A program made the position numbers and the translations under genes. A stretch of 64,000 bases of DNA, from IMG/VR virus record IMGVR_UViG_3300030673_000004, positions 248,001-312,000 of that record. One strand, 5' to 3'. Positions 722-46,092 of the stretch are shown one piece after another (position 1 is the first letter of the stretch; the number at the start of each line of letters is the position of its first letter). The notes under the pieces were generated by a model. The model saw only the letters and a program-made list of their open reading frames with translations, ran no database searches and was not told where the DNA came from.

Positions 722-781
722 TTGACAAAGATACAAAATTAATGTATATTTGTTCTTGTCACCCCAACAAGGAGTTCTCAA
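722..781 (+). promoter_or_regulatory. early promoter-leader cassette, copy 1
   Basis: TTGACA 722-727, 17-bp spacer, TATATT 745-750, AAGGAG RBS; near-identical copies at 19957 and 38949(-). Confidence 0.9.
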
Positions 782-2462: not shown

Positions 2463-2536
2463 ACATCCTATGTTTAGTGTCTGCCTCTCATAAACAACTT
2501 CTTTATGCGCAAGTTAACCGTTGCGTGGAGGCTAGC

Positions 2537-3310
2537 ATGATAACGATTTACCCTAATGAAGTAACTGCTTCAGGCAAAAAGTCTAAAAAGTCTAAAGACC
2601 CAAAATGGGAGCAGGGGGCTGTCAAGCATCCCGGTAGCTTGCGTAAATGGGCTGAAAAAGACTTTGGTCTTGAGAAGGGTGAGAAGTTTTCAATTTCCCT
2701 TTTGGATAGAATGCATGTGTCGGCTGAGAAGTCTGGAAATGCGCACAGGATCAAACAGATAAACTTAGCCAAGACATTTGTTCGTCAGGGTAAGAAAAAG
2801 CACGCAAAAGCGGAAGCCGCCGTTGCTACTGCTGCTGCTGTATCTGTTCTAGCAAGTGCTGGTACCCCGGCTATTGTTGTGGCTGGTTCAGAAGGTCTTG
2901 ATGATCATCTAGCAAAAAATGATCGTTTTGAGACAGGCAAGCCTGTGACTGTTGAATACATTCATAACGATACATCTTCCACCTATGGTGGTTCAAGGTT
3001 CGGAAAGGATGTAGAGCCTTCTGGCTTTTATGTGCTAGAACGTGATGCTGGTGCTCCTGTTCCTGAGGGGTGGAGTGCAGGAAAGATGGAGATCAAGAAT
3101 CCTTTGGTCCTTGACTGGGGCTCCGACTCTGATGGTGATACAGATAGTTGGAAGCATGTTCTTGCTGACGTTTATCGTGCTACAGGTACCGAGCTCACAA
3201 AGAAGCTCCTGGCTGAGGGTTATACCCATATTGTTACTTTGGATGATGGAAAGCCTACCGAAATTGTAGCTCTTGGGCTTCCTAAAGGTACGAAGGAACC
3301 CGAAGAGTGA
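2537..3310 (+). CDS. putative virion protein with C-terminal ADP-ribosyltransferase-like domain
   Basis: GGAGG before ATG 2537; YIHN...GFY...KNPLV...GYTHIV...TEIVAL resembles ART-PolyVal domains. Confidence 0.55.
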   Translation: MITIYPNEVTASGKKSKKSKDPKWEQGAVKHPGSLRKWAEKDFGLEKGEKFSISLLDRMHVSAEKSGNAHRIKQINLAKTFVRQGKKKHAKAEAAVATAAAVSVLASAGTPAIVVAGSEGLDDHLAKNDRFETGKPVTVEYIHNDTSSTYGGSRFGKDVEPSGFYVLERDAGAPVPEGWSAGKMEIKNPLVLDWGSDSDGDTDSWKHVLADVYRATGTELTKKLLAEGYTHIVTLDDGKPTEIVALGLPKGTKEPEE

Positions 3311-4380
3311 TTTCAGATCAAGCTGAATACGATGTTAGCCGTGCTATTCGGTTTGTTCGCGATCATATTATTGAGTGGGCTAGTCATCATGAGTCAAAAA
3401 CTCCTTATATTATTAAGGGACATTCAACATCTGATCCACAGTGTCCATCTAATCCTCTGTTTACGGTTCCTCTCTGGTATATATTTAGGCTGAATAAAAA
3501 TCCAAAAGGGTCAGATCCTAAGCAGCTTGATAGAATACTCCCTAAGTACGAAAGCCCTGAGGCGGTAGATACATTATATAAATTACTTTGTAACATATCT
3601 TTGGTATTTACAGAGGGGCCTATAACGTTAGCTTACGATAAAGAGTACGAAGCTTTATTCCGTAGGATAGCATTAGATGCGATACCCAAATTTGGGACTA
3701 CAGGGATCATAGCTTTACCCTACCAAGAAGCTGTGCATAGGTCCTCATACTTGGAGAGTGTCCTGAGTCATGAAGTTCGGCATGCTGCTGACTCTGTAAC
3801 TAACCACTGGTCTATGCGTGATCCACATCCAGATTATAGCAAGGATCATGAGGTCTATTATAAAGACCCGTCAGAGATTAGAGCGCGTGTCACCGAAATA
3901 GGCCACTCGGCTGAGGATGTTATTCATGCTTTAGTTGCTCAGTCGATAGGTACCCAAGGTGAGCCTGAGCACAGAGCTAACTCTCTACGGATCTTAACTG
4001 AGATATTTGGTTCTGGGGCTGCTGTTTTTTCCTCTTGGCTTTATGGGTTACTCACGCCTTTTCATAAAGGTGGTGTATCCTTAATTGGGGATACAGAAAT
4101 ACCTAGACCTACATTGGATATATCTTTAACACAAGTGCTGTTGAAGATTACCGCAAGTGCCTATTCGGGTAAAGCTATAAATTCAAAAGAGCAGGAAGCT
4201 ATTCAAGATTGGATGGCTAATTATAGCAAGTCCTTATACAATTATTTGGTAAAGCTCTACAGATCTAAGTTGCCTTTATCTGTTTTTCATGAGAGCAAGC
4301 CGAAAACTGAACAGCTATGGAAAATAGCTCATAAAAATCTAGCTCTTATTAAGCAAGAATTACCTAATATGACGTGGTAA
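3307..4380 (+). CDS. zincin-like metallopeptidase
   Basis: LSHEVRHAAD (HExxH) plus downstream YYKDPSEIRAR. Confidence 0.65.
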   Translation: MISDQAEYDVSRAIRFVRDHIIEWASHHESKTPYIIKGHSTSDPQCPSNPLFTVPLWYIFRLNKNPKGSDPKQLDRILPKYESPEAVDTLYKLLCNISLVFTEGPITLAYDKEYEALFRRIALDAIPKFGTTGIIALPYQEAVHRSSYLESVLSHEVRHAADSVTNHWSMRDPHPDYSKDHEVYYKDPSEIRARVTEIGHSAEDVIHALVAQSIGTQGEPEHRANSLRILTEIFGSGAAVFSSWLYGLLTPFHKGGVSLIGDTEIPRPTLDISLTQVLLKITASAYSGKAINSKEQEAIQDWMANYSKSLYNYLVKLYRSKLPLSVFHESKPKTEQLWKIAHKNLALIKQELPNMTW

Positions 4381-4408
4381 TTGGATACTAATTCTTATTG
4401 AGGACATA

Positions 4409-5620
4409 ATGAATATCATTCCTAATGAACATACACTAGAGCAAGTATCGCATGAGTTCTTATCTAAGCTGCCTGGGCATTTGCCCATGCCTAAATTTGA
4501 GCTGAAGAGTGATTACCACTCGGCTTGGCTGGGTAAGTGTGAATGGATGCCCGGTGAACGTAATACTACTATTTTTGTTCAAAAGAGTATCTTTGCAGAT
4601 AAAGATACTCTTCGTAGAGTCGTAGCCCATGAATTGTGTCACCACTGTGACTATCTCACAAATGAGCTATCCGCTTATGAGAAGGATCCTAAGACTTTCT
4701 CCATCCATGAGCGCTATCGTGATGGGCATGGATCGTCGTTCCATAAGATTGCATCCCTATTAAACTCTGTTTACGGTAAAAACTTTGTTGTTGACAAGAG
4801 TGATCTAGCAATGGATCTAGAGAAGGTACCCGAGTATACAATACTCTTGATGCGAGACAAAGGTAACCGAATCTACTGGTCTGTTGCTGAGCACCCCTCA
4901 GAAGAGCAGTTAACACACATTACTGATCTGCTTACTCAGAAATTCGATCATCGCGAGTATAAGTTAACTAAGTCTACGGATCCTCTTTTAGCGAAGGGTT
5001 CACCTATTGGACACGGGTTCTCTACACCTAAACCTGGTAAGGATCCTGTTAAGAATGCTCTTGTAAGCCGCTTGGCGGAACTCTGGAAGAACGGTGAGAC
5101 TGTAACCCCACCGCATGTGGTACAGTCCTCAGAGGAAGAAAGTGTCTTTGTTCCTCGTGAGCGTAAAGTAACTATTTTTGCTCAGGGTTCTGTTTATTAT
5201 ATTGCTGAGTCATTTTCCTCTGAGATAGGACAATCGACTGCTTATGATAAATACAATTTAATCGCTGGCCCGCTATCTGCTCGTAATGTTGCTATTGTCC
5301 GACCTATTATGGAAGGTCGCATTACAGCTAAGTTACCTAAGAATCTAAAACTCAAAGTCCCAGGTCAACTATATGGCAGTATTGAGTTAGAGTTCTGTGT
5401 ACCTGAGACTGATATTTCGTTTCTTGTGATTGCATCTGCTCGTGGTGAGATAAAACTAGACCTCATGGAAGGCTCTAATCGACATAATGTATTCACACGT
5501 GACATGAAACAAAGTATCTGGGAAGCGGCACCTGCGCAAGTATTTACGGCTATATTTGTTACTATTCGTCACGCTCTTATTGATCAGATGCAGCAATTAG
5601 GTATACAACCAGTCCTATAA
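4409..5620 (+). CDS. SprT-like zinc metalloprotease domain protein
   Basis: VVAHELCHH...GHGSSF, i.e. HExxH followed by HGxxF. Confidence 0.75.
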   Translation: MNIIPNEHTLEQVSHEFLSKLPGHLPMPKFELKSDYHSAWLGKCEWMPGERNTTIFVQKSIFADKDTLRRVVAHELCHHCDYLTNELSAYEKDPKTFSIHERYRDGHGSSFHKIASLLNSVYGKNFVVDKSDLAMDLEKVPEYTILLMRDKGNRIYWSVAEHPSEEQLTHITDLLTQKFDHREYKLTKSTDPLLAKGSPIGHGFSTPKPGKDPVKNALVSRLAELWKNGETVTPPHVVQSSEEESVFVPRERKVTIFAQGSVYYIAESFSSEIGQSTAYDKYNLIAGPLSARNVAIVRPIMEGRITAKLPKNLKLKVPGQLYGSIELEFCVPETDISFLVIASARGEIKLDLMEGSNRHNVFTRDMKQSIWEAAPAQVFTAIFVTIRHALIDQMQQLGIQPVL

Positions 5621-5685
5621 ATCTGCAAGAACTTCTCTACAGTACACAACTTAAGAACGACTTAGGTGTACTGAGGAGTTAAAAA

Positions 5686-7134
5686 GTGGCACATTCCGTT
5701 AAGCACCAGATATTTGAAGCCATTGCAGATTCACATTTATCTGTACTTTGTGACGGTATTGCTGTTACAGCCGACGTAGTTTCTGACCCTAATTCCTTAG
5801 ATGCTGCCTTAAAAAATAATAATGCTTTTGATACAATAGAGCATGACATTGCAGTTAACCAGGAACAGGCTCCTTTCATAGTTGAGCTTAATCGGCAGTT
5901 AGCTGCTATGACAAATAAAGTACATCTTGTAGCTATAGGGATGAAGCCAAAGCAACAAGGATCTGGTTACTTCTCATTCAGGATCGGTACTAAAGAAGGA
6001 ACTCTGGATGTACTTGTTATTGTTCCTTGTGTATTAAACCAGAACAAAGTTAGTCTTGCTCTTATAGTAAATAAAGCCCCCGTAAGCACTCAGCAGAAGT
6101 TTCAACTTCCGTTTGATCCGGGGAATACTTCCTTTTGGGAGCAGACACTTGGAAACATTGTGTCTAAGATAGTGACTACACTAAAGCCAAAGCTGGCAGC
6201 GATGCTTGCTACAACACAAAATCAAGGGAACAACACCGTGACGACTAACAATGCAACAGCCACAGTAGCAGAAGACGACAATTGGACGCTTGAGTGGGAT
6301 CCTGCTAAGATCCGTAAAGCTTCTGCTGATGGCACGGATAGCTCGGACGAGCCAGATATTTTAGATTATGAAGATGCCTATGAGTCTTTTCTTCAAAATC
6401 TAAATGAATTGATTTCTGGTATATTTGGCGATGATTCTGAACTCAAGTTAACCGCTACTGTTACATTAGGTAATGTTCCACAGAATAAATCTAAAGTTGA
6501 TATCATTACAGGCAATAAAGCTCAAGATCTAATAGATACATATTTCTCTCAAGGTGACAAAATCCTGCGTTTTCGCGAGGGTGACACCAAGGATAGCTTG
6601 ATTGCCGAGACAGAAGCTCCAGGGCATGCCCAACCAGATACATATGAGTTTACTCTTACTGATGATAGTGAAGCTAACGCAGCTCATACTGTTATTGGTA
6701 AGTGGGAATTCTTTGAAAAAGTAGGACTTTCTAAGCCTAAAACCTTTGTTGAACTCGGTGGGGTTCGTCCTAAGAACTATCAAGATCTCTTGAAGTTCAT
6801 GGGCATCATTTGCAGCAATAATGAGATTACTACACAGGCACGTAAGTGGATTGAATCCCAGCGGGATGAGAAGCTGCCCAGTCTTCATGGGTTCGCTATT
6901 GCCTTAAACGGAAATGCACAAACACCTATAGTTATGGTAGGTAACAGTGCAGTAGCCTATGCTATGGTCTTTACTAAAGATGCTGTTAACATCGCTCGGT
7001 CTGTGAATAAAAAGTCTTATCCTGTTGGCCGATGGACATGGGAAGAGCGTTGTTCCCGCTTGTCTTGTGCCGCTGTTCTCATCTATCTGCTCCGCACGGT
7101 GTCTTCTAAGATCACCAGTGAATACACACTATAA
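5686..7134 (+). CDS. hypothetical protein, probable virion component
   Basis: 482-aa ORF, GAGGAG RBS, acidic linkers. Confidence 0.75.
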   Translation: MAHSVKHQIFEAIADSHLSVLCDGIAVTADVVSDPNSLDAALKNNNAFDTIEHDIAVNQEQAPFIVELNRQLAAMTNKVHLVAIGMKPKQQGSGYFSFRIGTKEGTLDVLVIVPCVLNQNKVSLALIVNKAPVSTQQKFQLPFDPGNTSFWEQTLGNIVSKIVTTLKPKLAAMLATTQNQGNNTVTTNNATATVAEDDNWTLEWDPAKIRKASADGTDSSDEPDILDYEDAYESFLQNLNELISGIFGDDSELKLTATVTLGNVPQNKSKVDIITGNKAQDLIDTYFSQGDKILRFREGDTKDSLIAETEAPGHAQPDTYEFTLTDDSEANAAHTVIGKWEFFEKVGLSKPKTFVELGGVRPKNYQDLLKFMGIICSNNEITTQARKWIESQRDEKLPSLHGFAIALNGNAQTPIVMVGNSAVAYAMVFTKDAVNIARSVNKKSYPVGRWTWEERCSRLSCAAVLIYLLRTVSSKITSEYTL

Positions 7135-7143
7135 GAGGAAACG

Positions 7144-10100
7144 ATGCCTACCTTCAATAATATTCCAAGTAATATCCGTAAGAATCTGCTAACACCTATT
7201 GACCTTACTCAGGGCACGGCTTTGCTTCGTTCTAATCTAAGGAACATCGCTAACAGTTTGAGTAATGTAAATGGCTATAAATCATTTCTTCGTCAGGAAT
7301 TGCGTTCTCTTATGCATCCGCGTGAGAACGGCTTTCTTGGTTTGGTAGCTACAAATAATGTCAATGATATATCTATTGATTTAGTAGGTAACCCTATTCC
7401 AAAGATTATCTTTGGTGGTACCTATGTTGACATTGCTGTAGTTTTCAATCAGGATGCTTTTCGTATTGTTCTAGAAAAGGACGCATCTGCTGATGGTGCT
7501 ACTGTTGCCGGGTGGATATTGGCAGTTATTCCATACACACCTTTTGACAAGCTCACTTTTGGTGGGTTCTTAATCTATTTACTTCGCCGTATTGACGATA
7601 TCTTGTCTAAGACAGCAGCGCTAACTCGCTATGACAATAAGCTTGTTCGTCTTCCTGTAAATTCTGTAGGTATCGGCAGAAATGATAGAGCACCTGAGGC
7701 ACCAGATGAAGCTGCTATTGCACAACCACCTCAGCCTATAGAGGCACCTGAGGTAGCCCAAGCTCCTGCTCCAATAGAGAAACCTAAGCCCGAGCCTGTT
7801 ATTCCCGAGCAGCCTTTAGAGGATGAACCTGAAGTTGAGGATGTGGATACTAAGTCTAAGGAATATAAAGCAGCAGCTTCCTTTTCCTTGAGTCCTGATC
7901 TGCAAGAAAGTACAACACCGAAGCATCCTTATGATGCTGTTGGTAATTATGCTACTTTCTTTCAGGTGTTGAAATCTAACTTGAGCGCTGTGCGTAAAGA
8001 GCTAGCTAAATTATCTGGTAATACGTCAGCTAGTGTTAAACTTGATAAATCTGCTATTGTATTTACTGTACAAAATGTACGTGACCCTCAGCTTAGCCTA
8101 TTGACATCTATATCTTTGTTACCTATTGGTCAATTGAACCTGGGTAAGAACAAGGGACCTCGTTTTGAGGTCACCGGTGTATTAGATACTACTTATTATG
8201 ATGGTGAACTTGAGGAGGATGTCGGAAATGTTACACATGTATCTGTAGGAACGTGGAAATGGCTTGCAGAGTATGGTCGTTTGAATACTCTTCAACTAGT
8301 AAATAAAATCGTAGCCGATCTACTTGAAGCCACAACGCATGTTGAACATGCAGCTAACACAAACTCCGACGCTGCTATTGAGACAGAGTCTGAAGCTACA
8401 GCCGCGGATAAGACTAAGCATCCTAAATTGCCTACGGAGGTTAAAGTGCCCGAATCTAAGACTGAGGTTGAGACCTACAAGAAGAAGCTGGCCGAGATCC
8501 GCAAAAAGTCAGAGAAAAAGGGAACGGACACATCGGCCTATAACAAGATAGAGAATAAAACCCCTAAGGCGAAGACAGGTAAAGAATTATCATCTGAGAT
8601 TAATGTACCGGAAGTACCTGATTCTGGAGCAACTACTGTTGCTGACAAAATTAAAGATTCCTTAGAAGAAGCACCTAAAGTAAAACTTCCAAAGAATGCC
8701 GCTATTTTGCCTAAGGTTGTACAGGCTGCAGAAGAAAAGACACCGATTAAACTGCTGCCTTTGAATAAGTGGAATCATAAGAATGCGGATCATTACATAT
8801 ACCAGCCAGGTGGCCATGATTGGAATGGTAATTCATCAGTTATTTCAATCAACAGAGACCCTGATAGTAACTCCTGGTATGTTCGCTTGAACAATATATC
8901 AAAGCAGTTTAAGCAGCTAGTCGGTTCTTTTGTTGAGCCAGTAGCCTCCATTGTTAATGGTCAACTTGTAGATCATAACGGTCAAGGAGATGCCTTTGAA
9001 TCTCCTGAGGCTGCCTACGAGGGTTTACTCTCTGCTCTTAATACGGCTTTATATGGGAATGAGGCTACAGCTAAAGAGTTTGATGAGGACTACACGGCAG
9101 ACTCGCTAACAGACCTTGAACTGAATGACATGGATACAGATTTTGCTGACACCGACAAAAGTCTTGAGGATCCTAATGATGTCGTTGAGGGAGCTGCTGA
9201 CGGGGATGAAGCTGCATCGGAACCACCGGCAACACCAGCAGAGCCTGAGTCGCTTGAAACGTCTGATGGCGATGAAGAGAAGGTTGACATTAACACAGCC
9301 CTTAAATTCCGTGCAGTGCTGCCAGAAGATGCGGACGCTGAGCTCCCATCAAAACTCACGGAGCTGTTTGATGCTATATCTGATGGAAAAGTTCCCGAGG
9401 ATACCGTGATCTTTGTAACATCTGGCACAGGGTTGCGTACCTACACAGTAGGTAAGAATGAGGATGACTCGGTAAGTCTTCGGTGTGAGTACAGTGACGC
9501 TTTGATTCTTGATGGTATGGCGGGTACTCTAGATGACACTGAAGTAACAAAGACATTGGATAAAGCTAAGTCTGAGCAAGAAGATCGTTCTGCTAGTCTT
9601 CGCAACATTGATGAGATTTTTGATGCTTTTGAGACTATCGTTAAAGAAGACACTTTCGATCCCCAGAACTTCAATGACACTGCTGATGGTGATGACGGTG
9701 GCTATACCCTACCATCTGATCGTGATCGCTTAGATGCTGATTTAGCTGATTACGCTAAGAAGTCTTCAGATGATGCTGAAGCTGAAACGGATGAAGAGCC
9801 ATCAGAGGAAGAGGAGGCCGACGCCGCTTTTGCTTCTGCTCTGGTAGATTTGCTCCACTACAAGGAAAACCCGGTGGCTGCTGCTGCTGAGGTGAACGCT
9901 ATCATCCACGCTTTCTCTGGTGATGCTGAGGCGGCTTTCTCCTTGATTGAAGATAAGGGATTGTTTGCCAACGCATCTACATTCCCTGTCATGGAGACCA
10001 AGTTCTACAAACGTGGCGCTCGTCAGTATCCTGCGTATCACATGAGTGTGGCATCTACTACAGAGCCTACTCTAATGTTTGTTCCTCGGACAGGTGCTTA

Positions 10101-10149
10101 CGCTATCGCATCCCTAGAAGAGCTACAGAGTGAAGAGGCTCGCGGATAA
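7144..10149 (+). CDS. large acidic protein, probable virion/head protein
   Basis: 1001-aa ORF with D/E-rich and Pro-rich linkers and repeated x-x-A-A motifs. Confidence 0.75.
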   Translation: MPTFNNIPSNIRKNLLTPIDLTQGTALLRSNLRNIANSLSNVNGYKSFLRQELRSLMHPRENGFLGLVATNNVNDISIDLVGNPIPKIIFGGTYVDIAVVFNQDAFRIVLEKDASADGATVAGWILAVIPYTPFDKLTFGGFLIYLLRRIDDILSKTAALTRYDNKLVRLPVNSVGIGRNDRAPEAPDEAAIAQPPQPIEAPEVAQAPAPIEKPKPEPVIPEQPLEDEPEVEDVDTKSKEYKAAASFSLSPDLQESTTPKHPYDAVGNYATFFQVLKSNLSAVRKELAKLSGNTSASVKLDKSAIVFTVQNVRDPQLSLLTSISLLPIGQLNLGKNKGPRFEVTGVLDTTYYDGELEEDVGNVTHVSVGTWKWLAEYGRLNTLQLVNKIVADLLEATTHVEHAANTNSDAAIETESEATAADKTKHPKLPTEVKVPESKTEVETYKKKLAEIRKKSEKKGTDTSAYNKIENKTPKAKTGKELSSEINVPEVPDSGATTVADKIKDSLEEAPKVKLPKNAAILPKVVQAAEEKTPIKLLPLNKWNHKNADHYIYQPGGHDWNGNSSVISINRDPDSNSWYVRLNNISKQFKQLVGSFVEPVASIVNGQLVDHNGQGDAFESPEAAYEGLLSALNTALYGNEATAKEFDEDYTADSLTDLELNDMDTDFADTDKSLEDPNDVVEGAADGDEAASEPPATPAEPESLETSDGDEEKVDINTALKFRAVLPEDADAELPSKLTELFDAISDGKVPEDTVIFVTSGTGLRTYTVGKNEDDSVSLRCEYSDALILDGMAGTLDDTEVTKTLDKAKSEQEDRSASLRNIDEIFDAFETIVKEDTFDPQNFNDTADGDDGGYTLPSDRDRLDADLADYAKKSSDDAEAETDEEPSEEEEADAAFASALVDLLHYKENPVAAAAEVNAIIHAFSGDAEAAFSLIEDKGLFANASTFPVMETKFYKRGARQYPAYHMSVASTTEPTLMFVPRTGAYAIASLEELQSEEARG

Positions 10150-10156
10150 TATAAAC

Positions 10157-10188
10157 AGATCGGGTGCTTTGACAGAAGCACCCGATCT
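10157..10188. terminator. intrinsic terminator hairpin
   Basis: AGATCGGGTGCTT/AAGCACCCGATCT perfect 13-bp stem between convergent genes. Confidence 0.8.
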
Positions 10189-10199
10189 TCGCTCTTTAA

Positions 10200-10277
10200 T
10201 TAGATACCAAACCAATTACAGAATAATCTTACGAGTATTCCAATTAGAACTTGTGTAGCTATTTCTGATAATGACAT
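10200..10277 (-). CDS. small hydrophobic peptide, Fst/Ldr-like type I toxin candidate
   Basis: MSLSEIATQVLIGILVRLFCNWFGI (25 aa); AGGAGGT RBS; TATAAT on - strand at 10336-10341. Confidence 0.55.
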   Translation of the reverse strand: MSLSEIATQVLIGILVRLFCNWFGI

Positions 10278-10393
10278 TTTAACCTCCTTTCTGTTGAAAT
10301 TATGCCGCGTGGCTTTTGTTGCCTTCCTGTTTGTGATTATAGTCCGTGTTTTCAAATAATCTCTTAGTATAATGCACACAACCAAGGTTGTTT

Positions 10394-11407
10394 ATGTCTC
10401 TGTTGTCTGATTTTCTACTAAAGCAAGGCGTTGTCTGTGCTGCTGTCACGCCTGAAGATTACAGAAAAGACCACGAAGCACCCGGTCCTGACTATGCGGC
10501 TCCTATGTATGACCTCGAAAAAATGTATCCTAAAGATGTCTATACAGGGCGCGGTCACGAATATGCTAATTCACCAGAAGAACGTGATGGGTTATATGCC
10601 GTATCTCGCACCCATAATAAACCCTGGGCACCCATAACTATATATCGTGCAGTACCCAAAGATATAAGTAGAGCTAAAATAAACGTTGGTGACTGGGTAA
10701 CTACATCCCGTGCGTATGCTAAAGAACATGGTGAAGCACACCTTGGTGGCCATGGGGCATATAAAATTCTGAAACTAATAGCACATGCCCGTGATCTGTA
10801 TACAGCCGGAGATTCTTTAGCTGAGTGGGGATATTATCCTCGTCCTGCTACACCCGAAGAGGAGCGCCAGGTACACGCAATCAGAGATAACAGTGCTCGG
10901 GAGAGATTGCAGCGAGCAGCAAATGGTGAGAAACTAATTTCAATTAATAAGTATCCCGATGATGCCTATTATGGTAAAGAGCCCGAGTTTTTTCAAAAAA
11001 TGTTAGACGATGAGTATCAAGCTACCACAGCGGTTGATACTATTCCAGATACAACGGATATAACGGCGGCTGTAAACTATCAAGACGATACAGACTATGC
11101 AACAGAGCATACGGAGTTAACAAAACTGGGTTTGATTTTTGGACAACCACAAAGTAAGAATGACGGTATCCAGGTAACCTATAAAGGTCATACATTACAG
11201 ATACGCCCTGAACCAAAAGAAGTGGAACTATCTCCTGCTGTACCAGCATCTCGTGGTCGAAAACATGTTCCTGCCTCTGTAAAAAATGTACCAGGTTATG
11301 CTGTTACCGGAATAACGCCAAACGGAAATGTTACTCATGTATTACGGGCTGAGGATGCTGATAAGTGGTTACGTGGATTAAAAGCTCATTGGGATTCTAA
11401 ACAATGA
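10394..11407 (+). CDS. ADP-ribosyltransferase-like domain protein
   Basis: IYRAVP...GDWVTTSRAYAKEHG...LAEWGY follows the R-S-E layout. Confidence 0.55.
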   Translation: MSLLSDFLLKQGVVCAAVTPEDYRKDHEAPGPDYAAPMYDLEKMYPKDVYTGRGHEYANSPEERDGLYAVSRTHNKPWAPITIYRAVPKDISRAKINVGDWVTTSRAYAKEHGEAHLGGHGAYKILKLIAHARDLYTAGDSLAEWGYYPRPATPEEERQVHAIRDNSARERLQRAANGEKLISINKYPDDAYYGKEPEFFQKMLDDEYQATTAVDTIPDTTDITAAVNYQDDTDYATEHTELTKLGLIFGQPQSKNDGIQVTYKGHTLQIRPEPKEVELSPAVPASRGRKHVPASVKNVPGYAVTGITPNGNVTHVLRAEDADKWLRGLKAHWDSKQ

Positions 11408-11904
11408 ACATTTTATCAACATTTCTTAATTCATGCAATGTATCCCATATAGTAATAGCAGCGAGCAAGAAACCTTCCTCGGGTGCTGATGATTCTAATC
11501 AACGACACCCGAAACAAATTGTTCCTGACATGTTTAGAGCTAATAAAGTAGATGGTCTTACGGATGAAACTAAGATTGTTGCTTTTTCCTTATTGGCAGC
11601 AATAGCTTCAGGAACACCTTTTCAAGAGCTTGAGTCTATTGGTATCTCTGTACCAAATAGTCCAACAAAACTGCGTTTTCACTTTGATAAGATGCCCGGA
11701 AATCAGAATTTCAAAGGTATTCGGTATACTCGGTACATAGACCATAGTGCTAATAAACATTGGAGATTTTATTACATAGTTGGTTCTTCCCATGTCGCCT
11801 TGTTAGATATCTTCGACAAAGACAGCAATAAGATAGATAAAAATCAAGTAACACGACTGGTGTCGCTAATTAGAAAATTCAAAAATCAATCTGGTGAACG
11901 TTAA
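11404..11904 (+). CDS. RelE/HigB (Gp49-like) ribonuclease domain protein
   Basis: C-terminal WRFYYIV...VALLDIFDKDSNKIDKNQV matches the RelE/Gp49 pattern. Confidence 0.6.
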   Translation: MNILSTFLNSCNVSHIVIAASKKPSSGADDSNQRHPKQIVPDMFRANKVDGLTDETKIVAFSLLAAIASGTPFQELESIGISVPNSPTKLRFHFDKMPGNQNFKGIRYTRYIDHSANKHWRFYYIVGSSHVALLDIFDKDSNKIDKNQVTRLVSLIRKFKNQSGER

Positions 11905-11908
11905 GCAC

Positions 11909-11937
11909 TTGACAAATGAACATTATTAATGTATATT
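11909..11937 (+). promoter_or_regulatory. sigma70-type promoter
   Basis: TTGACA-17-TATATT with TTAATG before the -10. Confidence 0.85.
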
Positions 11938-11957
11938 TATAGCAGGAGGACGACACC

Positions 11958-12143
11958 ATGACGAAGCTTTCCAATACTGACATCCATGCTGCTAATCAGG
12001 AAGCTCTTGCCTCTATGTGCCCTGAGATGTTCATGGCAACCGCCTCTACTGAACCTGCGGTCTACGGTACTTGTGACACTACGCCTCTGGACATCTCACA
12101 GGAGGATCGTGAGTTTCTTCGCTCTATGGATCACTCCGCTTGA
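11958..12143 (+). CDS. small acidic hypothetical protein
   Basis: 61 aa, AGGAGG RBS, own promoter. Confidence 0.75.
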   Translation: MTKLSNTDIHAANQEALASMCPEMFMATASTEPAVYGTCDTTPLDISQEDREFLRSMDHSA

Positions 12144-12150
12144 TTAGTGC

Positions 12151-12179
12151 TTGACAGCCACACGTGTCTTAAGTATTAT
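12151..12179 (+). promoter_or_regulatory. sigma70-type promoter
   Basis: TTGACA-17-TATTAT. Confidence 0.7.
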
Positions 12180-12222
12180 TTAAGCAGTCTTGTTTCTAAC
12201 CTGAACAACTTGAAGGTGATCT

Positions 12223-13497
12223 GTGGGCCAGTGGAAAGATGAGCGAGATACAATTTTGGCAGAAGCTGATCTTGATCCTAAGGTCCGCAAAGATCTGGAG
12301 TGTGTTTCCCTGGCGGATCCAACTTTTTTTGATATTCCTAGACTCCGTCCTTACTTTAAGTGGGATAGGACCTCATACCAGCAGCGGCTACATGTAACAT
12401 ATGTGACAGCTTTGTCTAATTGCAAAACACCAATTCAAGCAGCACGTATTCACGGAAGTATCATCAAGCATCTGCAGGAAAAGCTAAAGAGTGCGTCTTT
12501 GTACGCTGCGTTTCAGGACATTATCTCCGATCCCGGACATATTGACGCTACCTCGGTTAATTTCGAGATCGCTCTTGCCTTCCAGTGGGGATCTCAAATG
12601 TATGCTCCTGCGCACTACAAACCGGATCCTGCAGCCAGCGCACGTCGTTGGCGTGGAATCTACGGGGATTTAGATCCGTATAGAGATCAAACATTTGTTG
12701 CAGCACACGCAGTGATTACTACGGATGTCAATAATGCCACTGCGGCTGCTACCGCTGCTACCACAGCATCAGAAGAACCCTTGGCCAAGATTGATGTTCC
12801 TAAAGAGGGTGGTGATCGTCCTGCTTACTTGGCACAGTTGCGAGATGCCCTTAGAACTAATTTGGGTACCCAAGAAGATGCAACTGTTGCTGGATCCGCT
12901 GATGCTAACACACGTGCTGCGTTTGATACTCTGTGCGCAACAGGTAGTATGCCTACAGATACTACTCTATCCACCGTGGAACAGGGTATGCGTATCAGTG
13001 AACTGCTGAAAACAAGCTTGAATCGCCAAGAAACCGTTAGGCATCTAAAGAGCCTCGCGGAGTGTAATGATGGTGATAGCTGTCCTGCGGATCATGCACC
13101 GTGCCTGCTTGGTGCCTATGGTAGTCTTCGTTCTGGCATGCACAACCATTTCTGCTTGGACTCGGATGATCTTCTCTTTTTAGGGAGAGGTACTGCTCGT
13201 GGTGTTCTTTTCCCTGTTGGAAACGCTGTTCCTGGCGCACATTTCTCTGTAGATAGACCTGACACAGATAAAGTTACCCTGGAAGTATATCTGCTGCCGT
13301 TTAGTAGTCTAAAGAAACTGGATAAACTGTTAGGCTTTACAAGAGACGCAACTTCTCTATATACGAGACGTACTGTTTTAGCTACCATGGAGTCTGGTGA
13401 GTTGCTACTCACCCATGTCTATGAATATGACGGCAGAGCCTCTCGTGAGCCCATCCCAAGTGGGGATTGGTTTGAGTATAGGAAGTCACGCGAATAG
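12223..13497 (+). CDS. hypothetical protein
   Basis: 424-aa ORF with Ala/Thr-rich linker. Confidence 0.75.
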   Translation: MGQWKDERDTILAEADLDPKVRKDLECVSLADPTFFDIPRLRPYFKWDRTSYQQRLHVTYVTALSNCKTPIQAARIHGSIIKHLQEKLKSASLYAAFQDIISDPGHIDATSVNFEIALAFQWGSQMYAPAHYKPDPAASARRWRGIYGDLDPYRDQTFVAAHAVITTDVNNATAAATAATTASEEPLAKIDVPKEGGDRPAYLAQLRDALRTNLGTQEDATVAGSADANTRAAFDTLCATGSMPTDTTLSTVEQGMRISELLKTSLNRQETVRHLKSLAECNDGDSCPADHAPCLLGAYGSLRSGMHNHFCLDSDDLLFLGRGTARGVLFPVGNAVPGAHFSVDRPDTDKVTLEVYLLPFSSLKKLDKLLGFTRDATSLYTRRTVLATMESGELLLTHVYEYDGRASREPIPSGDWFEYRKSRE

Positions 13498-13506
13498 AGG
13501 AAACTA

Positions 13507-15249
13507 ATGTCGAGTCTGCCGAATAGCTTAGGTTACTTTGTTAAGTCAGCAGGCGCTCGTCCTTTTTCGCAAACTTCTATTGTAGCCGTTACTGAGAATA
13601 AACCTGCACTACAGTCTTATCAGGAATTCGGACTTAGCGCGTTTTTCCGAAACGACATTGATTCACTTGAGATACTAGTTGGACAGCGCTCTGACGGGCT
13701 GTCCTTTTCATCTATAGCCTCTGGTACCTTGGGGCTTTATAGGGTTCAACCTGGATGCCAGACAGACACCCTTTTGCGCAGTCTTGATTTTGAACCATCT
13801 TGTCAAAGATATGATAAGTCCTATAGATTTTATATGACTTCACCTGGAGCACCTGATGAGCAAATTTGGGTAGCTTGTGAGTTGACATTAAAAGATGGTA
13901 CAACAGTATTTAAGGACATACCGTTACTTACTGATGAAAATCAGGCACGCATCCATAATCAAAATCAGCGTGTTGGTCATCTAAGCAGCTCGCAGGATGT
14001 ATCGTGGGAGCATAAAGCCCCGGCTACCGTAGCTATTCGGGCCTTGGACGACTTGGCTGAGACACCGTTAGTTCAAATGAACTTCACAGATCAGCCCTTG
14101 CTTCGTTATGATGATGGTACGTTAATCTATGCTGGTGGTGGGAACCGTTTCTTAGTAGGTACTTCAAGTATTATATACCAGGATGAAGATACGGCCCCTT
14201 GGGATCTGGGCATGCCTGTATTCCTAGAAAGTACTGCTAGTAATTTGCTGCCACATGCAGGTATGAATGTTAATTATGGTACATGGGATTCTCTAAATGA
14301 CCCGGTCGTTGTTGAAACTCGTGAGGTTTTTACTGCTTTTGGCGATGCCTACAGAATGGCATTTTTTACAGCATCCTCACCGAAGCAGATAAATTCCACG
14401 TGGACCTGGAGGAGCGATAAAGTTGCTTTTGATGGGAATACTGTAACAGGTTCAATGTTTGTTTATGCTAACTCAGATGACGCAGATCGTCTAAAATTTG
14501 AATTAGTGCTTCAAGTTATTTCAGCTACAGGGTCCGCTGTTTTATTTGAGGGCACCAAGCAGCTAGCATACACAGACATAAAGAATGTTAATGTGCATGA
14601 AGTGAATTGGTGCAAAGAGACCTCTGCGACAGCCGTTGCCGGTTACGTTCAACTGCTTCTGCGTGTATCAAATTTCAATCCCGGTGATAGATTCATGCTT
14701 GGGCTTGGTTTCCCTCAGGTGGAATACGGCAAAACAGCATCTACTAGAATACCCTCTGGTGGCACACGTCAAAGGGATCAATTAATCTACCTACCTTCGT
14801 CGTCATACTTAGCTGAGATGGATTTTGGTGCCATGCAGGTGACATGGGCTCCACTCTATGAGGGAGCACCAGACCCTGCTGGTGACCAGATACTATTTGA
14901 TACACGAGATTCTTTAGGTAAGAGCGGAATTGTACTAAAGCACACACGAGTAGGTTTGTTTGTTGCTCGCTTAGTAGATGCTGCTGGGACCTTTGCGGAA
15001 GTATCATCTGCATCTTTGATACCCTTAGAGAATGGTGTTACATATAAAACAATTGTATATTGGGATGATTCTTTACGTCAAATGCGCATAGATATAAATG
15101 GATCCCCTCTAGTAACTAAAACATTTATGGCTTTTCCTAATATGGGTAAAGTAGCACCGACTAGAATTCTCTTTGGGTGTTCATATCTAGAACAAGAGAA
15201 TCCAGAGTTTAAGTTGTTTGGTTTTGAACATAAGATAGCGAAATCGTAA
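13507..15249 (+). CDS. putative tail/baseplate protein with C-terminal LamG/ConA-like domain
   Basis: 580 aa, beta-rich; QVEYG..ASTRIP...TR and ILFD..DS motifs typical of phage tail lectin-like proteins. Confidence 0.55.
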   Translation: MSSLPNSLGYFVKSAGARPFSQTSIVAVTENKPALQSYQEFGLSAFFRNDIDSLEILVGQRSDGLSFSSIASGTLGLYRVQPGCQTDTLLRSLDFEPSCQRYDKSYRFYMTSPGAPDEQIWVACELTLKDGTTVFKDIPLLTDENQARIHNQNQRVGHLSSSQDVSWEHKAPATVAIRALDDLAETPLVQMNFTDQPLLRYDDGTLIYAGGGNRFLVGTSSIIYQDEDTAPWDLGMPVFLESTASNLLPHAGMNVNYGTWDSLNDPVVVETREVFTAFGDAYRMAFFTASSPKQINSTWTWRSDKVAFDGNTVTGSMFVYANSDDADRLKFELVLQVISATGSAVLFEGTKQLAYTDIKNVNVHEVNWCKETSATAVAGYVQLLLRVSNFNPGDRFMLGLGFPQVEYGKTASTRIPSGGTRQRDQLIYLPSSSYLAEMDFGAMQVTWAPLYEGAPDPAGDQILFDTRDSLGKSGIVLKHTRVGLFVARLVDAAGTFAEVSSASLIPLENGVTYKTIVYWDDSLRQMRIDINGSPLVTKTFMAFPNMGKVAPTRILFGCSYLEQENPEFKLFGFEHKIAKS

Positions 15250-15347
15250 TGGCACTATACTTTGTCTGCTGGCTTTACCAGATAGTAATGGGTGGATCCT
15301 TTAAGCCACCGCAGGTGCTGAATTAGTATCTGAGCTAACTTCTTTGT

Positions 15348-15911
15348 ATGAAATCCTTAGCTTATGATTTGGCAAAGAGTGAGCTTGAGATGCTTATGGA
15401 CTGTGCTGTTTGCAATCATGTTACCGCAAAATCAGCCCAGAAATATCAAGAAAGAGTCAGTTCTATCGTAGCTGAGGCTCACGCGGATGCCTATGAAGAT
15501 GAGTATGCAGACTTGGCTGTCTTGAAAGCTACAGCAGTTACCTACTTGCAACAACAGGTGGACCGTTATGCTCACGTATTGACTCCCGTAGTAGATAATA
15601 ACACACAAGTATATGCTGCTTTTGCCTCTGTTCCAGGAGCTATACTTGAAAAGAATTCTATAGCTGTACCTAGCTTACATCATGTAACGCTATCACGAGT
15701 GGATAATGCTAGGCTAAAACGTATAATAGAAGCTGCTGAAGATGTACCCCATGCTCTATACATAATTAAGAGCATGTCTGAGGTAACTGCGTCGTCTGTA
15801 AGTTATGACTTGACATCAGATAGTTTATCATTCATACGTAGAGCAGTAAATGGCCTATCTCAGGATAGAACGGCTAAAGCCCTGAAGAAAGCTTTTGGTT
15901 CTCTGCTATGA
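15348..15911 (+). CDS. hypothetical protein, probable virion protein
   Basis: 187-aa Ala-rich ORF overlapping the next gene. Confidence 0.7.
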   Translation: MKSLAYDLAKSELEMLMDCAVCNHVTAKSAQKYQERVSSIVAEAHADAYEDEYADLAVLKATAVTYLQQQVDRYAHVLTPVVDNNTQVYAAFASVPGAILEKNSIAVPSLHHVTLSRVDNARLKRIIEAAEDVPHALYIIKSMSEVTASSVSYDLTSDSLSFIRRAVNGLSQDRTAKALKKAFGSLL

Positions 15912-42960: not shown

Positions 42961-45105
42961 ATGTCCACCACAAATAACATTGTCTTCTCATCTAAAGTAT
43001 TTGACACAGAAACTACCACAGATACATCTGGAAACAGTACAACATCTGTTGCTCTGACAGAACAATTTGCTGCTGATGATAAGCTATTCAGCCGCGTCTA
43101 TGTTAATAAATACGGTATTGTTACAGGCGGGCGTTTCGCTGAAGATGCTGGACTCCCACCGGATCCTGAATTCACGGGGCATATCGGTTTACGTGTACCT
43201 GCAGGGACTACAGATCAGCGACCTACAAAAGGTACCGCTATAATTAGGTATAACACCGACTTAAACGCCTTTGAAGTATATGAAGCCGGTGCCTGGACAC
43301 AACCATTTGAAGCTACCAACATGGGAGCCGTAACTACAAGCATATTACCAGCAGTACAATCGTCGGAGCTGTTTCAAATTGATGTAGGGAATGTATCGCT
43401 ACCTTTTCGGAGCGGTCAATTTGGTAGAATCGGTTTATCTAGAAAATCTGTACTCCTAGGCTCCGATACAGCAGATGGTGTTCTTGCTAATTACAATAAT
43501 ACACTATATTGGGGTGGCCAACCTCTAGGCAACCAAGGTAATCAGGGTGCTACTGGAGCTCAGGGGAGCCCAGGTAATCAAGGTGTTACCGGAGCTACTG
43601 GAGTTCAAGGTCCGCAAGGATTCGTAGGACCTCAGGGTAGTCAAGGGACAACTGGAGCACAAGGCAACCAAGGGTTTCAGGGTATTGCAGGTTCTCAAGG
43701 TGTAGCAGGAACACAAGGGCCTCAGGGATTTACTGGAGCTCAAGGTACTCAAGGGAACCAAGGTGTAATTGGAGCTCAAGGTACTCAGGGCAACCAAGGG
43801 AATCAAGGATCAGCAGGTACTTTCATAGTCACTACTACACTGTTTGTAGACTGCAACCGAGTAGACACCTATACGGCAACAGGAACATTAAGCTTTCCCT
43901 ATAAAACATTGGCTGCTGCTTTAGCTACTGTTACAGCCGCTACTCAGATAATTATGGCCCCTGGATCATATACTGAATCGGTAGCATCATACCCAGCATA
44001 CCCACTAGTTGTACACGGTAATGGAAGCACCTTAACACTGTCTGTTGCAACCACACTCACTAATAATTATACAGCGTATGACCTTAATGTAGTTGCTGCT
44101 AATGGCGTAACCTATTCTGGTGCGACAGCAACTACTAAATTTATCCTCAGAAATGGTAGTCGCAAAGGACCCTTAGCATTAACAGCAGGTATACTAGACG
44201 CACAGGCATGTACGCAAACATGGAATACTACATCAGATAAAGTTACTGTTAGTGGAACAGGACAATTAATTGAAATAGCTTGTATAAATACGTTGCCAAT
44301 AGTACAAAACAGTACAAGCTCTATTGTTTTTGTAGAAAACTGCAATTGGAATACATCTAGAGATAGCACATACCTAATTGAATCTAGTGCTGGGCAAATT
44401 AGCGTAGCAAATACAGTTGTTGCTAATACATCGGTCACAGCCGGAGGCGGTATCTATATCCATAATGCACAAACGGCAGCAGCCCCTAATGCTGTTGCTA
44501 ACTGTGTTATAGGTGCTGTAACCGCTGTTAATCTCGCATCTGGCGCAACTTTATATAGTAAAGTTGCTACTACAGGCACAGCCACATTAACAACTGCGGC
44601 TGCTGTTCCTGATTTGATCGGTGTATCTGGTCTTGCAGGTAGTCTAACACCAACAGCCGCAAATACATATACAATTGGTACTGTCGCATTAGACCTATCA
44701 GCTATCTACGCTCGCACACATGCAGGTGCCGGTGCAACTACCTTCGGCAGCACCTCGTATGCCACAACCATTACAGGTAGCTCTATTGCTCTTGGACAAG
44801 GACAAATACAAGGCCCCTCGGTATCTCAAGGAACAGCACTTTCATTAGTAGCACTTACACCACCTAACATCTTAGCAACAGCCGCATTTACATTGACGTT
44901 ACCAACCGCGTCGGCAACCTATAAAGGAATGACCTGGCTACTGTCGTCAGCCTCTTATATCATTACATATAGTGGTACATTTAAGTATTCAATAACTAAA
45001 GGTACATGGACAACCATATCAGCATCAACCTATGCTACTACTGCTGGCTATCTGCAGCACTGGATTTACTGTGATGGCAGTACTTGGTTTGTTAATCTAG
45101 ACTAA
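42961..45105 (+). CDS. tail-fibre-like protein with collagen G-X-Y segment and probable beta-helix
   Basis: VPAGTTDQRP..IRYNTD.N.FE.Y motif; G-X-Q/T repeats about 43528-43815; G.LSFPYKTL.AA...G.YTE. Confidence 0.75.
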   Translation: MSTTNNIVFSSKVFDTETTTDTSGNSTTSVALTEQFAADDKLFSRVYVNKYGIVTGGRFAEDAGLPPDPEFTGHIGLRVPAGTTDQRPTKGTAIIRYNTDLNAFEVYEAGAWTQPFEATNMGAVTTSILPAVQSSELFQIDVGNVSLPFRSGQFGRIGLSRKSVLLGSDTADGVLANYNNTLYWGGQPLGNQGNQGATGAQGSPGNQGVTGATGVQGPQGFVGPQGSQGTTGAQGNQGFQGIAGSQGVAGTQGPQGFTGAQGTQGNQGVIGAQGTQGNQGNQGSAGTFIVTTTLFVDCNRVDTYTATGTLSFPYKTLAAALATVTAATQIIMAPGSYTESVASYPAYPLVVHGNGSTLTLSVATTLTNNYTAYDLNVVAANGVTYSGATATTKFILRNGSRKGPLALTAGILDAQACTQTWNTTSDKVTVSGTGQLIEIACINTLPIVQNSTSSIVFVENCNWNTSRDSTYLIESSAGQISVANTVVANTSVTAGGGIYIHNAQTAAAPNAVANCVIGAVTAVNLASGATLYSKVATTGTATLTTAAAVPDLIGVSGLAGSLTPTAANTYTIGTVALDLSAIYARTHAGAGATTFGSTSYATTITGSSIALGQGQIQGPSVSQGTALSLVALTPPNILATAAFTLTLPTASATYKGMTWLLSSASYIITYSGTFKYSITKGTWTTISASTYATTAGYLQHWIYCDGSTWFVNLD

Positions 45106-45129
45106 CCGTAACTAGGGTGGGGGAAATTT

Positions 45130-46035
45130 ATGAAACTTGAATACAAACCACGGCCATTACTTTACTCGGAAGCTGGTGGTGGAATCTATGGCGTTGGTCC
45201 CTGTCGCTATGTACATGAACTTGAACGAGCCTTAAATAAATCTATCTGCGATCTTGCTGACGTATTTATTGGTACATCTATTGGAGGTGTTGATTCAAGT
45301 TTTATGGCTACGGGGCATAGTGGAAGTAATTGTTTACAACTTCATCGAGATAATCAAAAAGCCATATTTGGTGATGAAAACTTATTGTATGAAACAGTAA
45401 AATGCGGTGCTCAGTATGATGACTCGGCCATTGTAGGCATGCTCAAGAAACAACTGGGCAATGCCACCATGGATCAAGCACTAAAACCACTGTATCTAGT
45501 TGCTTGGGATATAATTAAGTGTCAAGTTAGGATATTTGGACCACAAGATAAAGATATTCCTATTTGGTATGCCGCTAGATGCAGTATGGCCGCACCAACA
45601 TACTTCAAAATAATGGACAAACGGTATATAGACGGAGGAGTAGCTGCTAATGACCCAGCCATGCTTGGAATTGCTGCCGCTTACCTGGATGGCTACCTTA
45701 CACCAGACATGCGTGTACTTAATTTAGTTACCTCAGGAGATACACCCGATAAAAGCCCTGTTGATGAAGACGCATTTATACTTACACAAGTAACTGATGA
45801 AATACTACCAGCGCTTACTTCAGGTAACAGCGCAGGTGTTGGTCTAATGCTTAAATTTGTACGCCAATTGATGTCGGATCTTGGTAGAAACATGCAGTTT
45901 TATCGGGTTAACCCAAATAGTCCTGATTATAAATTAGATGCTGTTAGCAAAGCAACGGACATTGAAAATATATGGGCAACCAAATACCAAGAAGATGCTG
46001 TCAGTCTAACCAGCTTTATGGTAACTGATTCCTAA
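45130..46035 (+). CDS. patatin-like phospholipase
   Basis: GGGIYG, GTSIG nucleophile elbow, SMAAPTYF, IDGGV.ANDP. Confidence 0.9.
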   Translation: MKLEYKPRPLLYSEAGGGIYGVGPCRYVHELERALNKSICDLADVFIGTSIGGVDSSFMATGHSGSNCLQLHRDNQKAIFGDENLLYETVKCGAQYDDSAIVGMLKKQLGNATMDQALKPLYLVAWDIIKCQVRIFGPQDKDIPIWYAARCSMAAPTYFKIMDKRYIDGGVAANDPAMLGIAAAYLDGYLTPDMRVLNLVTSGDTPDKSPVDEDAFILTQVTDEILPALTSGNSAGVGLMLKFVRQLMSDLGRNMQFYRVNPNSPDYKLDAVSKATDIENIWATKYQEDAVSLTSFMVTDS

Positions 46036-46092
46036 GTCTAATTAGTTTCGGCAAATAACCTCTGTTTAGACAATGTGCTAATAGAGGAACCA

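Follow-up and report, generated by a model that had tools for sequence, protein, structure and literature searches.

A short alanine-centred motif, [VAI]xA[AS], is over-represented in a row of eleven plus-strand open reading frames (ORFs; p1–p11) of the jumbo phage record IMGVR_UViG_3300030673_000004, and recurs in the head proteins of the same phage. Judged from sequence, it is about evenly balanced whether this motif is the site of the head protease, with p1 and p4–p8 (perhaps also p11) being head-internal precursors that are cut and packaged. The ORFs lie within positions 2477–15911 of the window, the 64,000-nt stretch that was analysed (bases 248001–312000 of the record), to which coordinates refer unless given as genome positions, and most are preceded by good Shine-Dalgarno sites. 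The record itself is a complete genome, 375,537 bp long, that has direct terminal repeats and a G+C content of 42.8 %; the phage is known from metagenomes only. Genes for replication, nucleotide metabolism and anti-defence occupy genome positions 0–120 kb, collagen-like fibre genes the far end of the window, and Baseplate_J is found at genome 315.6 kb. Its head genes place the phage in one lineage with Ralstonia phage RSL1, Pseudomonas phage PaBG and the Erwinia/Dickeya jumbo phages. An earlier note on this DNA had described p1–p11 as one cassette of head-packaged effectors with shared leaders and an Ala-specific cleavage code at domain junctions; the strings that it quoted are all present, including MITIYPNE at 2537, MNIIPNE at 4409, MSLLSDFL at 10394 and MNILSTFL at 11404.

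Within the eleven ORFs the motif is found 36 times, against 14.7 ± 3.7 expected from per-protein shuffles (0 of 2000 reaching 36), an enrichment that is partly circular because the motif was defined from these very genes, leaving the tests on head proteins and on conservation as the only independent ones. Its density of 8.4 per 1000 aa is 2.5 times that of the remaining proteome (3.4), and the excess is confined to p1, p5, p6, p7, p8 and p11; p4 holds a chance number, its single site being placed at a real junction. The narrower form [VAI][TN]A[AS] is 5-fold enriched in the cassette (Fisher 4e-5), with no enrichment of its reverse. Extended by an acidic residue to [ED][VAI][TN]A[AS], it occurs 17 times proteome-wide against 4.4 expected and only once in reverse, and EATA[AS] occurs 7 times against 0.5 expected. 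Eleven of the 17 copies fall into three clusters, namely the cassette (5), the protease together with the scaffold, and a block at genome 197–203 kb. Outside the cassette, 6 of the 12 copies are contained in five proteins (protease, scaffold and three genes at 197–203 kb) that constitute 2.4 % of the proteome (binomial 1.5e-7). Genome-wide, motifs near N-termini are not enriched (11 vs 10.8 expected). Enrichment of exact k-mers over the proteome gave a signal that came mostly from paralogue families, and SVAS, a candidate from that search, was dropped, being scattered over all gene classes.

The head module lies 125 kb upstream of the cassette and comprises protease, scaffold, virion protein and capsid protein in the same gene order as in RSL1 and Motura. 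The protease (genome 120673–121509; phrog_18299, E = 8.6e-49), which the earlier note had proposed to seek elsewhere in the genome, was located only after the scan for [ED][VAI][TN]A[AS] pointed there, and takes its identity from PHROG annotation. No Pfam S77, S78 or Terminase_6C match occurs anywhere in the genome. The major head protein matches phrog_2522 (E = 1e-48), and both it and the protease are 30–40 % identical to those of RSL1-like, PaBG, Erwinia and Dickeya jumbo phages. The scaffold-like protein is acidic and Ala/Pro-rich, with 17 copies of [VAI]xA[AS] against 8.1 expected. In L025, a 305.9-kb relative with a capsid protein 48 % identical to the one studied here, the scaffold has 18 copies against 4.3 and the capsid protein 10 against 1.8; the corresponding values for RSL1 are 9 against 3.1 and 6 against 1.5. 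Enrichment in scaffold or capsid protein is thereby seen in three of the four lineages compared.

Position as well as number is retained in these head proteins. In an alignment of 14 capsid proteins, (V/I/L)-x-(A/S/T)-A occupies one fixed position, where a variable, indel-rich stretch gives way to the conserved core, with A91 and D94 invariant. Similarly, FFEVNAA in the protease of this phage and PVQVTAA in that of L025 stand at the same position amid unrelated flanks, and it is there that homology to other proteases begins. Around the head module of L025, a sigma-70 family protein is encoded a few genes upstream (L025:4016–4909), and patatin, primase and helicase genes directly follow the capsid gene, neighbours by which the gene order there differs from that of this phage.

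The third cluster is formed by three genes of the block at 197–203 kb. The product of g197907 (674 aa) has an internal duplication with two EATAAT sites and a repeated ALASAG[VL]xH, g199931 (211 aa) holds 4 motif copies, and g200563 (882 aa) starts MIGKTMLHYVTAS and appears GNAT-like by eye, with no Pfam match. No relatives of the block were found in the phage collection by tblastn with g196163 and g197907, and for want of such a match it is not tied to the portal.

The cassette is present in the same order in three relatives, L031 (p5 81 % identical), L019 (66 %) and L032 (42 %); neither the phage collection nor IMG/VR contains a close DNA match to the cassette. Among sites with no more than 40 % invariant flanking columns, 12 of 19 retain the motif in every relative, as against 18 of 117 for 18 control motifs of the same form (Fisher 3e-5), which supports the action of purifying selection on the cassette motif in diverged linkers. 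Wherever it could be tested, the proposed placement of the motif at domain junctions is borne out: the sites of p1 and p6 fall in linkers with a low predicted local distance difference test score (pLDDT), that of p4 at the edge of a domain shared with p5, those of p5 between conserved blocks and that of p7 ahead of a RelE-like fold (Table 1).

For p1, the start at 2537 agrees both with the GGAGG Shine-Dalgarno site ahead of it and with the length of the gene in relatives. Its AlphaFold2 (AF2) model consists of a disordered leader, a helical domain (aa 32–90), an Ala-rich linker modelled with low confidence and a confidently modelled C-terminal domain, with all four motif sites within stretches of pLDDT <50. 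In the linker, AEAA and ATAA are kept in two relatives, VLAS is replaced by ILAN in L031, and AVAS is found in the same linker of a further homologue, P0045. The C-terminal domain is predicted to adopt an ADP-ribosyltransferase (ART) fold with a conserved catalytic-type triad: AFDB cluster matches are to ART-PolyVal-like proteins (probability 0.97–1.0), PARP and RES, the Atlas score is 0.92, Y165 and E242 are invariant and HN143–144 is conserved. Matches in the PDB to AcrIF11, MbcT and diphtheria toxin are weak, and the Pfam model PF18760 is not matched. Among the 862 homologues of this domain, many reside inside polyvalent proteins of 2000–4000 aa with InPase, ART-PolyVal, MuF, RelA_SpoT, RadC and LPD38. 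A wide VIA search with p1 returned matches swamped by the helical N-terminal domain, and PDB sequence searches with p1, p2, p3, p6, p7 and the p1-family profile gave nothing usable.

BLASTP among the cassette proteins reveals no paralogy except for weak signals between p2 and p3 and between p4 and p5. The latter reflects a domain at the C-terminus of p4 and the N-terminus of p5, a profile of which matches only these two in the proteome. The single p4 site directly precedes this domain and has its counterpart at the same place in two relatives. In p5, a four-way alignment places the motif sites between conserved blocks, and the exact motif may persist where little around it does (Table 1).

The N-terminal domain of p6 matches phrog_2579 (E = 2.1e-33), with homologues and PHROG spanning aa ~21–158. 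Its AF2 model exceeds pLDDT 90 over most of residues 31–215, and VVCAA and DITAA fall in low-pLDDT linkers. The best PDB matches all belong to the ART superfamily, none being significant (Vis toxin, E = 0.16; Tpt1/KptA, Z = 5.6; CNFy, Arr, TreX and PARP13), and an AFDB search with this domain gave no named match; R85, TTS103–105 and E144 are conserved, and in P0023 the domain follows an ART-PolyVal domain inside a giant polyvalent protein. The p6 gene occupies a slot after p5 that varies between relatives, encoding 337 aa here, 619 aa in L031 (13149–15008) and 453 aa in L032 (5670–7031). The slot protein of L031 has the same leader, N-terminal and C-terminal domains with an ART-PolyVal domain inserted, giving two ART-type domains, and that of L032 has a different N-terminal domain before the p6-like one. 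Across these rearrangements the junction site is retained, with ITAA following the additional ART-PolyVal domain in L031, INAA in L019 and ATAS in P0012, which has a different N-terminal domain; an ITAA-type site thus stands directly ahead of the C-terminal domain in four proteins with differing upstream domains. With regard to p7, a RelE-like fold is predicted from Atlas template modelling (TM) scores of 0.54/0.73 to the Gp49 cluster over aa 34–164 and a feature score of 0.90–0.92; the Pfam Gp49 match (E = 0.026) reaches 15 bits against a cut-off of 23.9. As to the domain labels given earlier, two ART-like domains and one RelE-like domain are reasonable, that of p6 being weakly supported, and two zincins are weak, p3 being a borderline SprT-like protein and p2 carrying HExxH alone.

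These findings suggest the following model. A head maturation protease would cut at (V/A/I)-x-A where A or S follows, an acidic residue (E or D) often directly preceding the motif. The same motif marks the N-terminal region of the protease, the scaffold, the N-terminal part of the capsid protein, p1, p4–p8, perhaps p11 and the block at 197–203 kb. The cassette proteins so marked would enter the prohead as precursors, to be trimmed inside it. In p1, p6 and p7 this trimming would remove short leaders, and in the multi-block p4, p5 and p6 it would sever the linkers. The enzymes freed in this way, an ART-fold protein (p1), a second ART-like one (p6) and a RelE-like one (p7), may then enter the host with the DNA. 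In such an arrangement the repertoire of a polyvalent protein would be distributed over individual genes and cleavable linkers, and the slot after p5 would be exchangeable. For the cassette proteins we infer cleavage, the bond that is cut, packaging and injection alike from sequence features. Cleavage by the head protease would be the most economical account in that the motif is oriented, is conserved in diverged linkers and is common to proteins that head proteases cut in other phages.

A number of observations weigh against this account. The motif in reverse, with identical composition, is present in 20 copies in the cassette against 14.7 expected, so that the excess derives partly from Ala-rich stretches and is only partly orientation-dependent. 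No excess is seen in p2 (1 vs 0.9 expected), p3 or p10 (1 vs 1.4), and in comparison with a single close relative the motif is kept in 21 of 35 cases, not clearly above controls. Among head proteins, neither scaffold nor capsid protein of Motura has an excess, and the proteases of RSL1 and Motura have no corresponding site in their N-terminal regions. The cassette genes are not adjacent to the head module, and a literature search found no published cleavage motif for the RSL1-like lineage. The PNE stretch said to pair p1 with p3 is not kept, reading PST in one p1 relative and PNV in one p3 relative, and in p3 it may, by eye, be part of the native N-terminus of the SprT domain, since the Pfam match begins at residue 25. 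Of the paired leaders, only that of p6 and p7 (M-x-[LI]-L-S-x-F-L) is shared; it is unique in the proteome, its BLAST similarity is not significant, similar short N-terminal stretches occur in p6-family homologues of other phages, the p6 leader site is lost in L019, and no common targeting leader was found. Finally, the row is not one cassette but several transcription units, with a hairpin after p5 that likely ends a p1–p5 unit and sigma-70-type promoters before p8 and p9. Taken as a whole, the earlier description survives in its strings, its enrichment and the junctions tested, and loses the PNE pairing, the motif excess in p2, p3 and p10 and the second zincin; its interpretation gains partial support in silico from the head protease, the motif in its presumed clients, linker conservation and the polyvalent domains, with the single cassette and the shared PNE leader falling away.

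Side observations on leaders may be added here. Both p1 and g200563 begin M-I-...-VTAS. Two large ORFs of 1282 and 1180 aa at genome 150228–157593 (L006, L007) carry (I/V)VTA(A/S)QFDRDL near the N-terminus, another possible leader with motif.

Several of the points above also fit a different explanation, that these are ordinary intracellular host-takeover or anti-defence enzymes, neither cut nor packaged, and that the Ala/Thr/Glu-rich spacers of this phage favour the motif as a linker or helix cap, kept for flexibility or for some other recognition. This is the strongest of the alternatives, and is considered unlikely, if by no means negligible. The reversed motif and the genes without excess favour it, as do the general tendency of scaffolds to be Ala-rich helical proteins and a Tad2-like anti-defence gene that is divergent from p1 and keeps its position in the three cassette relatives (genes of the Tad3 and Apyc1 families are also encoded within genome 0–120 kb). 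The promoters add to this. Scored against the consensus TTGACA-N17-TATAAT, that before p8 is conserved in all three cassettes and belongs to a family of 19 genome copies found by k-mer enrichment (core AATGTATA), situated mostly before small genes on both strands, with another copy at window 722–750. The promoters before p8 and p9 suggest early transcription of p8–p10 by the host polymerase, a pattern more in keeping with proteins that work inside the cell in which they are made than with cargo produced late. The phage also encodes a sigma-70 family protein of its own (genome 50241–51413, minus strand), and a AACTTCTTT element precedes p1, p4 and p11 as well as a mixed set of other genes, including genes near the baseplate; owing to this sigma-70 gene and mixed gene set, the timing of expression is not readable from sequence. 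What composition fails to explain, however, is the orientation bias of 17 to 1 in the five-residue form. The confinement of the excess to three clusters, one being protease plus scaffold, is likewise left unaccounted for, as are the exact motif retained amid unalignable flanks and the fixed site of the capsid-protein family.

Processing of the motif by a peptidase other than the head protease, whether the zincin-like p2 or p3 or a host enzyme with Ala-x-Ala specificity (for example, signal peptidase I), seems improbable. A-x-A is the signal peptidase I rule, but neither a hydrophobic core nor a basic n-region is present in the leaders of p6 and p7. As for the zincins, p3 is SprT-like, p2 carries HExxH, and zincin autoprocessing is a published proposal for polyvalent proteins (PMC5512222). 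The identity of both as zincins is itself weak, however: the PF10263 match of p3 scores 25.3 bits against a cut-off of 25.6, p2 has no match in Pfam, PHROG or PDB, and the HExxH regions of the two share weak local similarity (E = 0.011). Moreover, the motif is common to protease, scaffold and capsid protein, which are clients of head proteases, and distant relatives retain it in their head proteins. By tblastn, p3 matches Tunturiibacter phage Tunturi_5 at 35 % identity.

A similarly small probability attaches to the view that the motif-bearing proteins are tail, baseplate or other structural parts of the virion, in which the motif would be a maturation or assembly site. Such a view draws on gene position, with the genes downstream leading to the collagen-like fibres (42961–55013) and Baseplate_J, with p11 overlapping the next gene, and with the AACTTCTTT element common to genes near the baseplate. 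It is countered by ART-fold and RelE-like enzymes not being structural, by known prohead proteases acting within the prohead, and by none of the 11 proteins p1–p11 matching a tail family in Pfam or PHROG. For the large plus-strand proteins at genome 310–370 kb, PHROG and Pfam searches were mostly blank.

Maturation by the head protease, the preferred explanation, has parallels in well-studied systems. In T4, the internal proteins IPI–III and the Alt ADP-ribosyltransferase are trimmed by the prohead protease gp21 after Glu (L/I-x-E), and the cleavage motif of phiKZ-type phages likewise ends in Glu (S/A/G-x-E). The cassette would resemble T4 in possessing small enzymes or effectors whose short N-terminal segment ends with the protease motif, in the presence of one motif in scaffold and capsid protein too, and in an ART among the proposed cargo, like Alt. 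It differs in its candidate site, (V/A/I)-x-A|A/S, in the lack of a Pfam S77/S78 match, in sites that also lie inside multi-domain proteins, and in being known from sequence alone; no common targeting sequence was found, and a T4-style capsid-targeting sequence is not established here. The candidate site has more in common with that of herpesvirus assemblin, (V/L/I)-x-A|S, and the prohead proteases of tailed phages have the assemblin fold. Shared are an aliphatic P3, a free P2, Ala at P1 and a small P1′; in the phage, by comparison, P1′ is Ala as often as Ser, P3 is often Ala, the scissile bond is the presumed one and the protease is known from PHROG annotation only.

The jumbo phages phiKZ, 201phi2-1 and SPN3US are described as packaging many proteins in the head and ejecting them, with an essential prohead protease, gp175/gp245, cleaving these at a short motif (PMC5694885, PMC7411985 and PMC10052503). 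The large multi-block proteins with internal cut sites proposed here are comparable, whereas the capsid protein and protease are nearest to those of RSL1, PaBG and Erwinia phages, and the putative cargo has recognisable enzyme folds. Polyvalent proteins form a class for which packaging and injection have been predicted (Iyer et al. 2017; PMC5512222). The C-terminal domain of p1 and the N-terminal domain of p6 recur within members of 2000–4000 aa beside MuF, ART-PolyVal, InPase, RadC and LPD38, and the repertoire of ART, putative zincin and RelE-like nuclease is also alike. Unlike those chains with 2–15 unrelated effector domains, p1, p6 and p7 each have one recognisable enzymatic domain, two being found in the slot protein of one relative alone; processing is proposed to be by the head protease rather than an in-chain metallopeptidase, and the cassette yielded neither a MuF nor a portal-linked domain. 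The cassette is proposed as a variation on the T4/phiKZ theme of head-packaged, protease-trimmed proteins, with an Ala-type site and a division into genes with a variable slot.

More tentatively, and with somewhat less confidence than for the cassette, the same may apply to the whole jumbo lineage of RSL1, PaBG, the Erwinia/Dickeya types and this metagenomic clade. Its protease would then recognise a herpesvirus-like Ala site, (V/A/I)-x-A|A/S, and not be Glu-specific as in T4 and phiKZ, with one code serving both in capsid maturation and in the loading, trimming and release of a set of enzymes that can be exchanged. If true, the head cargo of jumbo phages could be read from sequence across a lineage that has cultured phages of plant pathogens and Pseudomonas, giving a pointer to genes that act in the first seconds of infection. 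It would also provide a phage example of an assemblin-type Ala site, linking phage and herpesvirus maturation by choice of substrate.

Table 1. Features of the p1–p11 region, in window coordinates unless marked as genome positions
Feature	Position	Strand	Description
Tad2-like (anti-Thoeris) gene, 340 aa	1440..2462	-	N-terminal domain PF11195, E = 9.3e-12; context only, outside the motif set
p1, 257 aa	2537..3310	+	11-aa leader ending VTAS, small basic helical domain, Ala-rich linker, predicted C-terminal ART-fold domain
p1 leader site VTAS, aa 9-12	2561..2572	+	VIAS, AVAS and (E)ATAS in relatives 85-58% identical; adjacent PNE varies
p1 inter-domain Ala-rich segment, motif copies AEAA, ATAA, VLAS	2810..2857	+	pLDDT <50 at residues 89-105 and 110-119
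p2, 357 aa	3307..4380	+	HExxH (SHEVRH; HEVRH)
p3, 403 aa	4409..5620	+	Borderline N-terminal SprT-like zincin, HELCH; PF10263 E = 1.5e-5, aa 25-124
p4, 482 aa	5686..7134	+	C-terminal domain aa ~335-482, related to p5 N-terminal domain
p4 junction site (E)ANAA	6673..6684	+	Directly before shared domain; EATAS at same place in L019 and L032
p5, 1001 aa	7144..10149	+	Multi-block, Pro/Glu-rich and acidic linkers; motif 10 vs 4.1 expected
p5 site AAAS	7870..7881	+	After Pro/Glu-rich linker; invariant in 4/4 homologues, flanking invariance 0.21
p5 site (E)ATAA	8395..8406	+	TATAS, EATAA, EVTAA in relatives; T419 and A420 invariant, 8% of flanking columns invariant
p5 site VQAA, variable linker	8719..8730	+	VQAA, EARAS, EAKAAA in relatives; motif copy retained despite sequence shift
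GC-rich hairpin, 13-bp stem	10157..10188		Just after p5 stop; terminator scan and sequence
p6, 337 aa	10394..11407	+	N-terminal helix, linker, folded domain aa 24-215, disordered linker, C-terminal domain
p6 junction site ITAA	11060..11071	+	Directly before C-terminal domain (xNYQDDTDY); pLDDT <50
p7, 166 aa	11404..11904	+	33-aa N-terminal extension, then predicted RelE/ParE (Gp49) fold
p7 leader site VIAA / IAAS	11452..11466	+	IVAS and VIAA in relatives, flanking invariance 0.21-0.25
Sigma-70-type promoter upstream of p8, TTGACA-N17-TATATT	11909..11937	+	11/12 consensus matches; conserved in L019 and L031
p8, 61 aa	11958..12143	+	Three motif copies vs 0.3 expected
Sigma-70-type promoter upstream of p9, TTGACA-N17-TATTAT	12151..12179	+	11/12 consensus matches; kept in L019, not in L031
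p9, 424 aa	12223..13497	+	N-terminal domain, Ala/Thr-rich linker, C-terminal GGACT (gamma-glutamyl cyclotransferase); PF06094 E = 1.2e-11, aa 298-416
p10, 580 aa	13507..15249	+	Motif at chance number
p11, 187 aa	15348..15911	+	Four motif copies, AFAS alone kept in relatives; stop overlaps next gene's start
Second motif-rich block	genome 196163-203211 (L009:6163-13208)		Three genes with [ED][VAI][TN]A[AS] copies

Of the remaining genes in the row, p8 keeps ATAS in L019 and has AVAS instead in L031, the linker copies of p9 are not conserved in position, and p10 has no family match in Pfam or PHROG. It may be that p2, p3, p9 and p10 are simple neighbours of the motif-bearing genes.

Upstream of p1 in this phage lies an ORF of 11 codons (2505–2540), the stop of which overlaps the p1 start (ATGA), with AACTTCTTT ahead; the upstream sequence as such is nearly identical in L031. 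As a late promoter, AACTTCTTT was rejected, being a real upstream element with a mixed gene set; TTAGTAT, considered as a promoter upstream of p6 and p11, is not enriched and was also discarded. A further element, AACTTCTTTGT (15338–15350 for p11), abuts the ATG of p11, g136306 and g226714, none of which has a Shine-Dalgarno site. Variants close to it precede g313963, g325805 and g366506, and one lies 32 nt before p1; sites and variants map to genome 136296, 226704, 313950, 325792 and 366487. The element may act as a promoter, a leader or a translation signal.

Beyond p9, GGACT domains occur at the C-terminus of a 1014-aa protein (L001:886–3927) and in a 184-aa protein, making three in all. 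At least 14 proteins of the genome match Amidoligase_2, and a class-II glutamine amidotransferase is also encoded, a set that hints at a large peptide-ligation or tagging system. Towards the far end of the window, the three collagen-like fibre genes (one of 2004 aa) have a G+C content of ~0.50, against 0.43 for the genome, and a strong skew of G over C. A fibre gene of 714 aa is one of three ORFs of equal length in the genome (178963, 190701 and 290961).

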